Sequence record: PP968062.1
Length of the DNA stretch: 64,000 nt
Reading direction: 5' to 3' (one strand)
Positions 46,401 to 50,431 of this stretch are shown here, in pieces. Position numbers and translations under genes: made by a program. Numbering within the stretch: the first letter of the stretch is position 1; each line of letters starts with the position of its first letter. A model generated the notes under the pieces. The model had not been told where the DNA came from, did not search any database, and saw only the letters and a list, made by a program, of their open reading frames with translations.

Positions 46401-48110
46401 ATGAGTGATGATATTTCTTTTAGTAAAGAAGATGTAGTTGGTATCGAAGCTAAACATATTACTTACGTTACCGACCGTAACCATCGCAAGCATGACTTGC
46501 ACGTTGTTAAAGAGGTCATCCATCTTAAGGACAAGCGTCGGATTCCTCGTCTCCGTTTTATTGAGGATTATGAACGTCCTTGGTGGTTGGACCCTGAGGC
46601 CAACAAGAAAGAAGGGCAACGTTCTTACACTGAGAAGAAAGACTACGAATATGAGAAGAAACTCCTCAAACGTAAGTCTACTCAAATTAACATGCCGCAC
46701 GCTATCGCTAAAGCTCTTGGTGATTACAGCATGGGTCCTAACCCACGGATGCGTCAACTGAGTCGTAGTCCTTATCTGTACGGTTCTGACGTTAGCTCTG
46801 TTTGCTATCTGAAGAACGACTATCGAATGGCTGCTCCTGATCTGATCTCTCGTAACACTGTCGCTGGTGGCGACATTGAGACCAACGTTTACGAAGATGG
46901 TAAAGATGGTGAGATCATCTGCATGTCCGTATCGTTTAAAGATAAAGTCTATCTGGCTTATCTGAAACGTTGGGTAAGTGACCTCAAAGATCCTATACAA
47001 GAAACCTTTGATGAACTGGAACGTATCCCTGAGTTGGTTGCTCTTCGTAAGGGACGTAATCTGAACATCGAGATCGAAGTAGTTGATCAACCGGTTCACA
47101 TCGTAATTAACTGCATAAAGCGTCTCCACAAATGGAAGCCTGACTTCTTCTCCTTCTGGAACATCAGCTTCGACATGAGTCGAATCCTGAAAACTCTGGA
47201 AGACGCTGGTGTTGATCCGGCGGTTGTATTTAGTGATCCGTCTGTACCGGCTAACTACAAGTACTTCCACTTCCGTCAAGATCAAGCGATGACCACTACG
47301 GCATCGGGTGTAACCAAGTCTAAAGGTCCAGAAGACCAATGGCACTGGATTACTTGCCCTGCATCTTTCCAACCGATCGATGCGATGTCTACTTACCGTG
47401 TAACTCGTCTGGCTAAAGGTAAGGAACCGTCTTACGCGCTTGATTACATTCTGAAGAAAGAACTCAACGTCGATGAAGATGCTGAGATTCTGGGTGAAGG
47501 TGATCTGGTTAAGTTCCAGAAAGGTCTCGACAAACTGTTAGCTGAACGTCCGGGTAGTTATCCTTATCTGTTCGTTAACTACAGCGGTAAAGAAGATGAC
47601 TGGACTCCGGTTGAACACTTCACTTGGGGTGACACTGTAAACCTGGGTAACCATGTTCGTTACACCATGAACTTTGGTAAGCTTAAGTTCCCTGAAACTG
47701 ATCACCTCGGAGGGATCGAATGGCACATTGAGATGCAGAAGAACCACAAGGTTCGTTATGGTCTTTACAACATCATCGACTCCATTCGTCTGGAGCAACT
47801 CGATGAGAAGATCAATGACCTTGCCAGTTCTATTACTCTGTTCTCGAAGTCTTCCGACTATAAGAACTTTAGCTCTAACCCGAAGCGTCTTTGTGACGAC
47901 ATGCACTTCTGGTATCTGAACCGTCCTGAGCCGTGTGTCATTGGTACTAGCTCTGACCAAATGGTTCACGAGCTCGATCAGTACGTAGTGGGTCACGATA
48001 GCTGGATTGTTACACTGCCTTCTTACATGGCTGGTCCGAACGGATTGAAGTGTGTTAAGGACTTACCTGATTACAAGACTTTGATCTTTAGCCACGTAGC
48101 TGATTTGGAT
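46401..48110 (+). CDS. family-B DNA polymerase subunit with 3'-5' exonuclease domain (phiKZ gp82-like), exon 1
   Basis: GGDIETN (ExoI), FWNISFDMS (ExoII), YNIIDS (ExoIII); ends HVADLD, half of polymerase motif A. Confidence 0.85.
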
Positions 48111-49832
48111 TAAATATACGTAAAGATGATATTTCCTGTTATTGTATACAGGAGATATTAACATGATAAATAATGACATGCGTTACTTACCTCACTCTGG
48201 TCGACGGTATATGGTCAGTCGTTGTGGTAAGGTGTATGATACGAGTGGTATTGAGATAAAGCCTAATGGTGGTAACGTCAGATTAACTTGGTTAAATGGC
48301 GACGATAGTTATTCGGTGGGCATGTTAGTAATTGTAACATACCAGCCTATATACCTACCTGATCACCTTTGGATAAAAATCGAACCTCTTCATCTAGATT
48401 GTGACCCTAACAATAATCATGTCGATAATTTGCGGTATCGTTTCGTAAATGGTAAATTGGAGTATGAAGCAATTCCAGGCTTCTACTATATTCCACATTA
48501 CACCAAATATGTAATCGATATTTACGGAAATATGCTCACTGCTGAAAATGGCAGAGATAAGACTTGGGGTTATGTAAAGTCAGATCTAGAACGTAATTCG
48601 AAAGGTGGATACAGATTTACACGAGTCGTTAATGAACCCGGTGTTAATTCTGTGCTACTTAGACATAGAGCGTTGTGTTTTGTGTTTAAACCAGTTGAGC
48701 GTGCAAGTGATTATGACTTGCTCGTAAACCACATTGATGGCGTACCAGGTAACGATAACTTAGACAATTTGGAATGGGCGACGTATGCAGAGAATAACAA
48801 GCATGCTCACGCCAACGGTCTAAGTGGTGGTAAAGCTAAAGGTGTACTGATGCGTAATATTGAAACCGGTGAACTGAGTAAATTCGCAACCACTAAAGAG
48901 GCGGCGAAAAGTCTTGGGCATGGTTCCAATGCACAAATACGACATCGCTTAAGACATGGTCAAACCATCCACTATCTCGATAATTTACAATTCAAATGGG
49001 ATGATGGTACCGACTGGCTGGATGTGGATATAACCACACCTGCTATTGAATGTAAAATCGGTACAATGATGGCTTCTCGAAATGTCTTAACTGGTGAAGT
49101 CAGAACTTTCGGATCATTTGAAGAAGGTGAGAAATTAACTGGTATTGACAAACAGACGATTGCAATTCATATTCGTGATAATCAGATTGTTCCTTTCCAA
49201 GGTTTTAATTTTGGTTGGTACAAAGAAGGCATGGAATGGCCTATTCATTCTGATATTAACATGAAGGCCTACAAGAAATATCCGACACGTACGCCTGACC
49301 CAATTATTGTGGAAGACATGATACTTGGGGATAAAGTAATCGTGGAAAGTAGGAATGAATTAGCTACTCTTCTTAAGATCAGTCCCAGTTATGCTACTCA
49401 ACTTGTGTCAAACGCAATGATTTATCAGGATAGGTACAAAATGACCTATCATCGTTTACGTGACAACATTTTAGTCCCATCAAGTTGGAATACTTGATGC
49501 AAACTTCTTTAATTGCCGGGGAAATCCTTAGAGACATGTACACCAAATCCATGTAGTGATACATGGACGGCCAGATTAACTACCTGGGTATGGTAAAAGA
49601 GACATGTATTGGGTGATCCGCAGCGAAGCTTCTCTCTGAGAAGAACGTTCAACGACTATCGAAACCACTGCGCAAGCAGACAAGGGAGTAGAGTAGGATC
49701 AAGTGATCCGAAATGGGAAGCATCCGATCCTCGCAAGAGAAGGATGGTGATATAGTCTCCACATCCAGGGAAAGCCTGGAGCAGCACGTTATAGTGCGGA
49801 TAGAGCGTAACGAACTCTATCGAAGATACTGG
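48111..49832 (+). mobile_element. group I intron with homing endonuclease in loop L1
   Basis: 5' exon ends in U, intron ends in G; P 49511, Q 49615, R 49647, S 49749; P7 GACTAT/ATAGTC; splicing restores DLD-IVSTYP in frame. Confidence 0.9.
48142..49497 (+). CDS. HNH homing endonuclease (NUMOD4/HNH plus NUMOD1-like repeats)
   Basis: VNHIDGVPGNDNLDNLEWATYAENNKH; earlier degenerate HLDCDPNNNHVDNL; AT-richer; likely start 48163 (GGAG RBS). Confidence 0.9.
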   Translation: MYTGDINMINNDMRYLPHSGRRYMVSRCGKVYDTSGIEIKPNGGNVRLTWLNGDDSYSVGMLVIVTYQPIYLPDHLWIKIEPLHLDCDPNNNHVDNLRYRFVNGKLEYEAIPGFYYIPHYTKYVIDIYGNMLTAENGRDKTWGYVKSDLERNSKGGYRFTRVVNEPGVNSVLLRHRALCFVFKPVERASDYDLLVNHIDGVPGNDNLDNLEWATYAENNKHAHANGLSGGKAKGVLMRNIETGELSKFATTKEAAKSLGHGSNAQIRHRLRHGQTIHYLDNLQFKWDDGTDWLDVDITTPAIECKIGTMMASRNVLTGEVRTFGSFEEGEKLTGIDKQTIAIHIRDNQIVPFQGFNFGWYKEGMEWPIHSDINMKAYKKYPTRTPDPIIVEDMILGDKVIVESRNELATLLKISPSYATQLVSNAMIYQDRYKMTYHRLRDNILVPSSWNT

Positions 49833-50066
49833 ATTGTCAGTACTTATCCGAACGTTAGCCAGATTCTCAACATTGCTCGGGAAACAACTGTCATGGAATT
49901 CTCCATGATGAAAGATATCTCTGAGCATCATCGTCGAGAAGTAGGGGTGAACTTAACTGGTGGTCGTGTCAACGCTATTGAGATCTGCCAGAAGATCATG
50001 AAAGCTCCGAAGTTGGATGAGATGTTGAAGCTCTACATGGAGAAGAAGGCTAACTCCCCAAAGTAA
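49833..50066 (+). CDS. DNA polymerase subunit, exon 2 (77 aa; spliced product 647 aa)
   Basis: Begins IVSTYPNV directly after the terminal intron G; codon usage like exon 1. Confidence 0.85.
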   Translation: MVSTYPNVSQILNIARETTVMEFSMMKDISEHHRREVGVNLTGGRVNAIEICQKIMKAPKLDEMLKLYMEKKANSPK

Positions 50067-50431
50067 CATATCGATGGAAACGCCGCGGAGGATACGAATG
50101 TTCCTCCGTTGGTGATAAGCGGTTCTCTGCTCTTAATGCTCAAATGCCAGATGGTCGTACAATCGAGATGCACTATCAATGTGACATCAAAGGTTATGAA
50201 CCAGGTGGTACTAATTGGAAGCTTGGTAAAGGTAAACCTCCATTAGCTTCTATAAACTCCTGGGAGGCCTATTACGGGCTTTGGGAGACTTGGGCTAAGG
50301 CAAACCCTGACTTGATGAAAGAACTTCGTATAGGAGCCGATAAGAACGAAGGATATCTTTCTGATGTCTTTGCATCGACTAGTATTTCACAGGCTCGTGC
50401 TCTAGCAGAACTTTTGAACAAAGGCTATTGA
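50057..50431 (+). CDS. NADAR-like domain; no ATG/GTG/TTG before 50144; possibly reached by -1 frameshift
   Basis: In-frame YECSSVGDKRFSAL..DGRTIEMHYQCDIK aligns by eye with YbiA FSNF..DGKTWPTSEHYFQAQK. Confidence 0.55.
   Translation, partial: PKVTYRWKRRGGYECSSVGDKRFSALNAQMPDGRTIEMHYQCDIKGYEPGGTNWKLGKGKPPLASINSWEAYYGLWETWAKANPDLMKELRIGADKNEGYLSDVFASTSISQARALAELLNKGY

Follow-up and report, generated by a model that had tools for sequence, protein, structure and literature searches.

A probably mobile group I intron with an HNH endonuclease gene in its P1 loop in the replicative DNA polymerase gene of Pseudomonas phage HPP-Temi

The interrupted polymerase gene and the intron boundaries

The GenBank record of Pseudomonas phage HPP-Temi (PP968062.1) contains two separate "DNA polymerase" CDSs at one locus and no annotated intron, which raises the question of whether they are parts of one gene and, if so, what separates them. 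The locus was analyzed in a window of 64,000 nt of this genome. HPP-Temi is a PhiPA3/phiKZ-like nucleus-forming jumbo phage of the chimallin-encoding PhiPA3/phiKZ group, and its genus includes an annotated nuclear shell protein. The interrupted gene encodes DNAP-N, the N-terminal subunit of a split family B replicative polymerase; it is a homologue of phiKZ gp82, and its identity with the phiKZ group is about 66%. The phiKZ-type polymerase is naturally divided into N and C subunits (PMC13648687). According to the analysis, the DNA between the two CDSs is very probably a mobile IA-type group I intron with an HNH gene in its P1 loop, and its splicing would join GAT to ATT (Table 1).

Table 1. 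Features of the interrupted DNAP-N gene of HPP-Temi (positions in the window).
Feature	Position	Strand	Description
DNAP-N exon 1	46401..48110	+	570 codons; translation ends ...HVADLD, whose final Asp (GAT) is the catalytic residue of motif A
P1 5' strand (GGAU|UAAA)	48107..48114	+	holds the 5' splice site after U48110; sequence and Rfam-modelled homologous PhiPA3 P1 hairpin
Group I intron	48111..49832	+	1722 nt; Rfam match, intron-less alleles, structure and covariation
In-frame TAA, first intron codon	48111..48113	+	ends exon 1 translation on unspliced RNA
13-bp hairpin	48127..48160	+	3' strand contains the HNH ORF Shine-Dalgarno AGGAG (48150-48154)
HNH homing-endonuclease ORF	48163..49497	+	444 aa; N-terminal domain, HNH_3 motif with His190, NUMOD1-like repeats
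Candidate P10 guide TGACAA	49461..49466	+	complementary to exon 2 +2 to +7 (49834-49839); weak candidate
Internal guide sequence, P1 3' strand (UUUAGUCC)	49470..49477	+	read as HNH ORF codons Leu-Val-Pro
P2 hairpin	49480..49497	+	49480-49485 with 49492-49497, perfect 6 bp, 6-nt loop
Ribozyme core	49504..49821	+	P3, P4, P5-P5c, P6, P7, P7.1, P7.2, P8, P9, P9.1, P9.2
P6-J6/7-P7-P7.1-P7.2 segment	49640..49714	+	shares 93-97% identity with the intron in nvRNAP beta' genes of the phiKZ-like type
Terminal (omega) G, 3' splice site	49832..49832	+	sequence and intron-less alleles
DNAP-N exon 2	49833..50066	+	77 codons, starts IVSTYPNVSQILNIARET; remainder of motif A and start of the palm insertion

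The two exons were searched separately, and the natural intron-less gene of 647 aa was used as a stand-in for the spliced product. Exon 1 matched PHROG 3011 (DNA polymerase) at profile positions 3–496 (E value 3.4e-200), and exon 2 matched it at positions 497–570 (E value 1.1e-27). Since the profile is divided between the exons exactly at 496|497, the join is seamless. Neither exon has a match in Pfam, and exon 1 has none among PDB sequences; the PDB matches of exon 2 are designer PPR proteins, which were dismissed as a repeat artefact.

An earlier note, made from the sequence, had proposed that exon 1 ends with TTGGAT, that the intron opens with a TAA stop and closes with a terminal G, and that splicing restores DLD-IVSTYP. 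TTGGAT is found at positions 48,105–48,110, the in-frame TAA follows directly, and after G49832 exon 2 opens with ATT GTC AGT ACT TAT CCG (IVSTYP). TAA is also the first codon of the PhiPA3 and Goslar introns and of the first intron of the fnug gp055-homologue gene (fnug_67). In six close relatives (HHBS36_1, PA1C, BRkr, phiLBG22, phiHQ, and PS119XW; protein identity 93.5%), DNAP-N is encoded by a single ORF of 647 aa that reads ADLD-IVSTYPN across the predicted junction; the identity of the exon 1 protein with that of the intron-less HHBS36_1 is likewise 93.5%. Both exons are collinear with the uninterrupted 647-aa homologues and contiguous in HHBS36_1 and phiKZ, and the gene is in one piece in 284 of the 290 phage records carrying it. 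The predicted GAT|ATT junction matches the reading of the intron-less alleles and is unambiguous, since the flanking bases differ; the comparison of alleles suggests that the intron is spliced at this point. No RNA run with this sequence turned up among sequencing runs, and four DNA runs yielded contigs only. The proposal that motif A is interrupted at its catalytic residue also held, as Asp570, the last residue of exon 1, aligns with phiKZ D562 in an identical context, and D562 was assigned as the motif A catalytic Asp by cryo-EM (preprint PMC13648687). A metagenome scan for the exon–intron junction gave 67 matches, all of them due to chance and none with a polymerase context.

Ribozyme structure and the open reading frame in the P1 loop

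The group I assignment was borne out by the Rfam model RF00028, which matched positions 49,446–49,781 with a score of 59.2 bits (gathering score 50) and an E value of 1.7e-12. The element is a real group I intron, an ordinary type of mobile element for phages, and is absent from the public annotation. In a hand-built model of the HPP-Temi intron, all 85 pairs are canonical, and eight of them are compensatory relative to PhiPA3. RNAalifold analysis of eight related introns found double changes in half of the pairs (30 of 60); P7 is invariant among the compared introns and so uninformative for covariation. The core from P3 to P9, including the P3/P7 pseudoknot, is backed by covariation. Between P7 and P3', P7.1 and P7.2 form hairpins at 49,668–49,679 (with a GNRA loop) and at 49,696–49,709 (with four compensatory pairs relative to PhiPA3). 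The intron is of the IA type, a subgroup called from the extra helices P7.1/P7.2 and P9.1/P9.2 without a formal classifier. The segment from P6 to P7.2 is nearly identical to that of the nvRNAP beta' intron, unlike the orthologous segment of PhiPA3, indicating that the core is a mosaic.

According to the model, the end of exon 1 and the first four intron bases (GGAU|UAAA) would pair with the guide located 1.36 kb downstream. The pairing consists of eight contiguous base pairs and includes the U48110-G49474 pair, which the earlier note had also recognized. Its claim that P1 forms only with this guide was too strong, since the guide comes only second when the 1.7-kb intron is screened for chance partners by pairing alone, and a candidate of 9 bp is present at G48818. 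What singles out 49,470–49,477 is its position beside P2 and homology with the PhiPA3 P1 hairpin. In addition, intron-plus alleles carry GGAU where intron-minus alleles carry UGAC. P2 is among the helices that RNAalifold recovered, and it shows compensatory changes. When IMG/VR was scanned for the guide-P2 20-mer, the sole match was PhiPA3 itself. The P1 that Rfam proposes for HPP-Temi (49,450–49,482) contains four non-canonical pairs and was rejected as a forced fit. As for P10, the proposed pairing of TGACAA with exon 2 exists, but the assignment is doubtful, as the hexamer is 7 nt away from the wobble G, lacks a PhiPA3 counterpart and would be expected by chance at 2–6%. Guanosine-initiated splicing would then join GAT to ATT, giving ...ADLD-IVSTYPN..., that is, motif A with the catalytic Asp. 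The strands of P1 are separated by a loop of 1.36 kb, a distance that could slow folding.

The HNH ORF (about 1.35 kb) is located in L1, since the P1 loop of the ORF-less PhiPA3 intron at the identical site has a length of only 3 nt. As had been proposed, the tail of the ORF encodes both the guide and P2: they correspond to its last nine codons and the stop, of which the last five codons and TGA (49,495–49,497, the end of the P2 3' strand) belong to P2. The GC content of the ORF is 39.5% vs. about 45–47% in its surroundings. The protein matches Pfam HNH_3 (PF13392; 30.1 bits, cut-off 24.8) and PHROG 59; the NUMOD1 score of 22.0 bits is slightly below the cut-off of 22.8, and homology with PhiPA3 gp210 extends through this region. 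His190 aligns with H82 of gp210. A PDB sequence search with the protein found no match, and single-sequence AlphaFold (AF2) modeling was uninformative (pLDDT 29). Near-identical pieces of the ORF are present in wastewater metagenomes. A search of the phage-intron literature found no ORF described in a "P1 loop", and a literature check showed that nuclear introns are documented to carry HEGs in P1.

Related introns and mobility

At the identical insertion site, the DNAP-N gene of PhiPA3 (gp085) contains an unannotated, ORF-less intron of 344 nt (71.7 bits), whose P1 hairpin has 7 bp and whose L1 has 3 nt. The PhiPA3 and HPP-Temi introns share the TAA first codon, the guide, P2, P3–P6, P8, and P9, with a core identity of 82.8%. 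They differ in that PhiPA3 has neither an endonuclease gene nor a P10 candidate; P7.1/P7.2 and P9.1 also differ, with compensatory changes. In the exon flanks from -12 to +12, HPP-Temi shows three differences from PhiPA3 vs. nine from the close relative HHBS36_1; among these nine are a switch of serine codon (AGT/TCG) and the GGAU that P1 requires. This co-conversion signature points to a tract of roughly 20 nt around the HPP-Temi insertion site, and the intron, being optional among close relatives and flanked by apparently co-converted exon sequences, is seemingly mobile. A single site thus exists in three states, with an ORF-plus intron in HPP-Temi, an ORF-less one in PhiPA3, and none in the PA1C group, a natural comparison in which the entry of an endonuclease gene into a ribozyme loop and its exit can be studied.

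Another chimallivirus group I intron, in the vRNAP beta-subunit gene of PhiPA3 (gp211/gp209), is also inserted right after conserved Asp codons (GAU|U) and, as in HPP-Temi, carries an I-HmuI-like HNH ORF, gp210, between the 5' splice site and the guide. The gp210 ORF crosses the guide (GUC CCA = Val-Pro, in the HPP-Temi frame) and continues into P2, with its stop codon in the 3' strand of that helix. The HPP-Temi protein has 26% identity with gp210 (E value 2e-23), the catalytic His being aligned. The two systems differ in the host gene, which is an RNA polymerase gene for gp210 and a DNA polymerase gene in HPP-Temi, and gp210 lacks the N-terminal domain of roughly 105 aa. Nicking and interference activities of gp210 were demonstrated (Birkholz et al. 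2024, PMC11620839), and its H82R variant is inactive, nicking being abolished by mutation of H82 (PMC11620839). The searched text of PMC11620839 on gp210 describes no RNA structure.

In Escherichia phage Goslar, the same host gene as in HPP-Temi contains an unannotated intron with gp069 (NUMOD1/HNH), which is the closest phage relative of the HPP-Temi HNH protein (31% identity, the N-terminal domain included). Its ORF is located directly after exon 1, ahead of a GUCC guide and a group I core. The Goslar junction, AD|LD, lies 6 nt upstream of the HPP-Temi site, the ORF stops 3 nt before the guide, and the core is divergent (44.7 bits, below the Rfam threshold). The ORF-in-L1 layout of HPP-Temi therefore recurs in the PhiPA3 gp210 intron, the Goslar polymerase intron, and a phiKZ-like RNAP intron. 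The ORF overlaps the guide and P2 in HPP-Temi DNAP-N and in PhiPA3 gp210, and no such overlap is found in Goslar gp069 and a phiKZ-like gp056 homologue. This recurrence, together with the putative co-conversion tract, the mosaic core, and the hairpin at the ribosome-binding site considered below, is new here.

Outside this group, the introns with I-HmuI of SPO1, I-BasI of Bastille, and I-PfoP3I of Pf-WMP3 are self-splicing, belong to the IA type, and interrupt a conserved motif of the polymerase; they encode HNH nickases that drive homing with co-conversion. These phages and their polymerases are unrelated to those of HPP-Temi, and the insertion sites differ. The ORFs of the three introns sit in other peripheral loops.

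Translation, splicing, and the function of the endonuclease

The 13-bp hairpin upstream of the HNH ORF has an MFE of -15.5 kcal/mol (z -4.2), and one of 200 shuffled sequences folds equally well. According to this folding model, the hairpin sequesters the ribosome-binding site of the endonuclease and would damp its translation from the precursor RNA. The 444-aa enzyme, related to I-HmuI and gp210, would be translated in a frame that crosses the guide and P2 and ends where P2 ends. The earlier note had suggested on these grounds of overlap that endonuclease translation and splicing compete for one RNA. The sequestering hairpin fits such competition, and I-TevI/td is a precedent for a translation–splicing conflict (review PMC3984707). 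In the T4 td intron, the endonuclease ORF overlaps the ribozyme core and translation is restrained to protect splicing (PMC3984707); however, td encodes a GIY-YIG enzyme in the P6 loop, whereas HPP-Temi has an HNH gene in L1, and in T4, unlike in chimalliviruses, transcription is coupled to translation. The arrangement is not unique to HPP-Temi, as it recurs in other chimallivirus introns. In a phage that keeps transcription apart from translation, such competition seems doubtful.

With a probability approaching an even chance, the intron is spliced without any such competition, transcription and self-splicing being completed in the ribosome-free nucleus and the endonuclease being made later in the cytoplasm from the exported excised intron or residual precursor, so that the overlap with the guide and P2 would be tolerated and not regulatory. 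HPP-Temi belongs to the chimallin-encoding group, and according to a review (PMC12908238), the phage nucleus strictly uncouples transcription from translation; with transcripts made in a nucleus free of ribosomes, a co-transcriptional conflict may never arise. The overlap is also kept in PhiPA3 gp210, which is an expressed active enzyme. On the other hand, a stop at the first codon and a strong hairpin at the ribosome-binding site are devices seen where ribosomes do threaten folding, as in I-TevI/td, although they may be inherited. The locus could serve as a system for testing whether nuclear uncoupling relaxes the conflict between intron folding and ORF translation.

In the proposed mobility of the intron, the enzyme would nick intron-less DNAP-N alleles of co-infecting relatives, and repair would copy the intron with roughly 10 nt of exon on each side. 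After gp210, it is the second candidate intron endonuclease in nucleus-forming phages and presumably targets the replicative polymerase gene at the part encoding the catalytic site. It is unlikely that the intron splices while the HNH protein no longer acts in homing, being either in decay (the Goddard-Burt cycle) or, on the model of PhiPA3 gp210, kept chiefly as a weapon of interference that damages the polymerase gene in competitors without the intron, for example PA1C-like phages or phiKZ. The 26%-identical gp210 does act in interference competition, intron-less phages that share the host show conservation of the predicted target region, and PhiPA3 has the same intron without the ORF, which indicates that loss or gain of the ORF does occur. 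Yet the HPP-Temi ORF is intact over 444 codons, with a Shine-Dalgarno sequence and the catalytic His, near-identical pieces of it occur in wastewater metagenomes, and the shortness of the co-conversion tract speaks for homing having really taken place in this lineage.

A broader reading, also rather improbable, unites several of these points: the HNH gene in L1, with its frame running into the guide and P2, would be a co-inherited chimallivirus intron module, tolerated because splicing takes place in a nucleus that lacks ribosomes. In that case the excised intron would act as the endonuclease mRNA, and the HPP-Temi enzyme would be in addition an interference weapon directed at the DNA polymerase gene of intron-less competitors in the same host.

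It is highly improbable that the intron is dead and that the polymerase subunit is produced as a 570-aa fragment ending at the TAA and a 117-aa fragment starting from ATG 49,713. GenBank does annotate the CDSs in this way, the polymerase is already split into N and C subunits, and this ATG is in frame. Against this reading, every part of the ribozyme is intact, the changes relative to PhiPA3 preserve the structure, and the family is rich in compensatory pairs; the exon flanks retain both the U-G wobble and the GGAU that P1 requires. The break would separate the catalytic Asp from the SxYP of motif A, the ATG lies inside P3' without a Shine-Dalgarno sequence, and the 40 extra N-terminal residues would be translated ribozyme sequence. 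With a spliced DNAP-N as the preferred reading, the annotation of a phage proposed for therapy needs correction, one polymerase gene having been filed as two CDSs and two spurious ORFs. The same annotation error was uncovered in PhiPA3 gp085 and Goslar gp068.

Intron position in the DNAP-N gene

Megablast matched the window at 100% to record PP968062.1, Pseudomonas phage HPP-Temi, with window position 46401 equivalent to 232401 in the record. This phage is a Pawinskivirus in the PhiPA3/phiKZ group and has a genome of 303 kb. The analysis confirmed that the polymerase gene of this jumbo phage, DNAP-N (phiKZ gp82 homologue), contains a real mobile group I intron (48111-49832), absent from the annotation, with an HNH gene in L1, the loop of P1. 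Mobile group I introns with such genes are already a well-known kind. GenBank record PP968062.1 has no intron annotation at the polymerase locus, and the paper describing HPP-Temi mentions neither an intron, nor HNH, nor DNA polymerase. HSP1_CDS0347, together with codons 1-40 of HSP1_CDS0348, falls inside the ribozyme core; both are almost certainly annotation artefacts.

Annotated features of the HPP-Temi locus and related introns of PhiPA3 and Goslar
Feature	Location	Strand	Remark
"DNA polymerase" CDS, GenBank record	window 46401-48113		
HNH endonuclease CDS, GenBank record	window 48163-49497		
Small hypothetical ORF, HSP1_CDS0347, GenBank record	window 49609-49755		
Second "DNA polymerase" CDS, HSP1_CDS0348, GenBank record	window 49713-50066		
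PhiPA3 gp085 (DNAP-N) intron	L003:3040-3383, NC_028999.1 about 74531-74882	minus	Unannotated, ORF-less; Rfam 71.7 bits
PhiPA3 gp211/gp210/gp209, published gp210 intron	L077:1162-2230	minus	ORF through guide and P2
Goslar DNAP-N (gp068) intron	L076:2866-4630, NC_048170.1 about 81189-82950		Carries gp069 (NUMOD1/HNH) in L1

The last six bases of exon 1, up to 48110, are TTGGAT, and TAA comes next; G49832 is the last intron base, and exon 2 opens with ATT GTC AGT ACT TAT CCG. All coordinates of the earlier note were correct when checked against the sequence, and its interpretation of the locus is supported. The exons were searched separately, with a naturally intron-less gene standing in for the spliced product. 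In the PHROG DNA polymerase profile 3011, exon 1 covered positions 3-496 and exon 2 positions 497-570, the two pieces abutting exactly. The gene is in one piece in 284 of the 290 phage records having it. In the close relative HHBS36_1, both HPP-Temi exons align gap-free with a single 647-aa CDS reading ...FSHVADLDIVSTYPNVSQ..., and the gene is likewise uninterrupted in PA1C, BRkr, phiLBG22, phiHQ, and PS119XW. The predicted GAT/ATT junction is fixed because these intron-less alleles align across both exons, and it cannot slide because the bases at the two splice-site flanks differ. We infer that the HPP-Temi intron is spliced.

The replicative family B polymerase of phiKZ is split into DNAP-N (gp82, 638 aa) and DNAP-C (gp50), and D562 of DNAP-N was assigned as the motif A catalytic Asp (2026 preprint, PMC13648687). 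Residues 556-569 of phiKZ read CHIADLD-IVSTYPN, and D562 corresponds to the last residue of HPP-Temi exon 1; therefore, the intron lies directly after the catalytic Asp codon and interrupts motif A as had been proposed. Pfam and PDB sequence searches did not detect the divergent HPP-Temi DNAP-N polymerase. Exon 2 ends with ...TCC CCA AAG TAA, a CCCAAAG-like slippery run (window 50037-50431 region) also found in PhiPA3, and the ORF that follows (50144-50431, PHROG 9995) lacks an obvious separate start.

Structure of the ribozyme

The Rfam group I covariance model matched 49446-49781 with 59.2 bits (gathering score 50). P1 is formed by GGAU/UAAA (48107-48114) and 49470-49477 (UUUAGUCC) with eight contiguous base pairs, including U48110-G49474, and P2 (49480-49497) is a perfect 6-bp hairpin. 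The P1 pairing thus exists as described earlier, but its partner is not the only one: by pairing alone, the guide ranks second inside the intron for the 5' splice site, and it was identified by homology and position instead. The proposed P10 (49461-49466 with 49834-49839, 7 nt from the wobble G) is also present, but it is a weak candidate: 2-6% of shuffles would give such a pairing by chance, and it has no counterpart in the orthologous PhiPA3 intron.

The secondary structure was written by hand (P2, P3, P4, P5-P5c, P6, P7, P7.1, P7.2, P8, P9, P9.1, and P9.2), and all 85 of its 85 pairs are canonical. The intron was assigned to the IA type because the P7.1/P7.2 helices stand between P7 and P3'. 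The orthologous PhiPA3 intron is 82.8% identical over the core; eight pairs (in P5b, P7.2, and P9.1) are altered on both sides with pairing kept, and two further pairs are altered conservatively on one side. A single "broken" pair was rejected as an alignment shift at a bulge. RNAalifold analysis of eight related chimallivirus introns independently recovered P2-P6, P7.2, P8, P9, and P9.1, with compensatory change in 30 of 60 pairs.

A 75-nt segment of the core (49640-49714, P6 to P7.2) shows 93-97% identity to the intron of phiKZ-like nvRNAP beta' genes (KEN49, PA7, fnug, and OMKO1), and at the equivalent segment the PhiPA3 intron has different and shorter P7.1/P7.2. This similarity to the nvRNAP beta' intron but not to PhiPA3 points to recombination of the HPP-Temi core with another intron. 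A second group I intron was found outside the window (PP968062.1 119681-119966, 70.5 bits). PhiPA3 contains four group I introns and Goslar one above threshold and two below; none was found in the HHBS36_1 genome.

Endonuclease gene and intron mobility

PhiPA3 carries an ORF-less intron at the same DNAP-N site. The RefSeq CDS of gp085 stops at the same TAA, the first intron codon, and exon 2, comprising 77 codons absent from the annotation, resumes 344 nt later; there, P1 folds locally into a 7-bp hairpin whose loop is 3 nt long. Both introns share the first seven bases, the guide, P2, and P3. In HPP-Temi, an insert of about 1352 nt (48118 to about 49469), with the HNH gene and its own Shine-Dalgarno sequence, lies between the shared 5' bases and the shared guide, which places the ORF in L1 in agreement with the original proposal. 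The GC content of the insert is 39.5% (45-47% in exons and core). Homology of the HNH protein to its relatives stops at about residue 431-436, and the last nine codons and stop are pre-existing guide and P2 sequence, so the ORF tail does encode these elements. The ORF may have been gained in HPP-Temi or lost in PhiPA3.

Members of the genus differ in whether they carry the intron. Intron-plus alleles (HPP-Temi, PhiPA3) read GAT YTG GAT / ATT GTN AGT at the site, and intron-minus alleles (HHBS36_1, phiKZ) read GAC CTT GAC / ATC GTN TCG. From -12 to +12, HPP-Temi has nine differences from the close relative HHBS36_1, including the AGT/TCG serine switch, and only three from the distant PhiPA3; beyond these limits the pattern is reversed. 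The flanks are thus a short co-conversion tract, which also provides the GGAU required by P1. In public sequencing run X5, a 31.7-kb contig of a related phage, with about 93% identity in the exons, carries 440 nt of different sequence at the 48105/49833 site, perhaps a third intron variant, and in run X1 unrelated sequence abuts both exon ends there. The occurrence of three natural states at a single site and the nucleus-forming host add modest interest.

The HNH protein contains Pfam HNH_3 above the cut-off, and NUMOD1 scores just under it. Its best phage relative is Goslar gp069 (31% identity, N-terminal domain included), and near-identical ORF pieces occur in two wastewater metagenomes. PhiPA3 gp210, a demonstrated nicking homing enzyme in interference competition that is inactive as H82R (PMC11620839), is 26% identical, with H82 aligned to His190; by this homology, the HPP-Temi protein is presumably a nicking enzyme as well.

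The endonuclease gene has its AGGAG sequestered in a 13-bp hairpin (48127-48160, -15.5 kcal/mol, z -4.2). Tight control of ORFs that overlap core sequence, with I-TevI as an example, is noted in a review (PMC3984707) and is a precedent for the suggested competition between endonuclease translation and splicing, which is plausible but unproven in HPP-Temi. A nuclear shell protein is among the annotated proteins of the genus, and these phages transcribe inside a nucleus from which ribosomes are excluded (review PMC12908238); splicing may therefore finish before ribosomes meet the RNA.

Similar layout in other introns

Nuclear group I introns with HEGs located in P1 have been documented (PMC3679873), and no description of the ORF-in-L1 layout in phage introns was found in the papers searched. 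The following cases indicate that the HPP-Temi layout is not unique. In the PhiPA3 gp210 intron, ...AAC GAT GAT stands directly before the 5' splice site, and the HNH ORF comes after the site with its own GGAGG. The frame passes the guide ACAGUCCCA, reading GUC CCA as Val-Pro in the frame also used in HPP-Temi, and continues through the 7-bp P2 to a TAG stop, the last three bases of the 3' strand of P2. In Goslar, exon 1 of DNAP-N ends with FVAD followed by TAA; gp069 comes next and stops 3 nt before the GUCC guide, and a group I core of 44.7 bits, below threshold, precedes the unannotated exon 2 (LDISSSYPN...). Relative to the HPP-Temi site, this insertion is displaced 6 nt upstream. In the phiKZ-like phage fnug, the gp055 homologue fnug_67 carries only a hypothetical-protein annotation; its first intron opens with TAA, and the ORF fnug_68 lies downstream of the 5' splice site and ahead of the guide.

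In one fnug intron an HNH ORF follows P9; another carries an ORF within L1. The KEN49 "RNA polymerase beta subunit" gene (PHIKZ055 homologue in fnug) contains two to three consecutive group I introns (L004:1001-3130 and L005:2378-3130).
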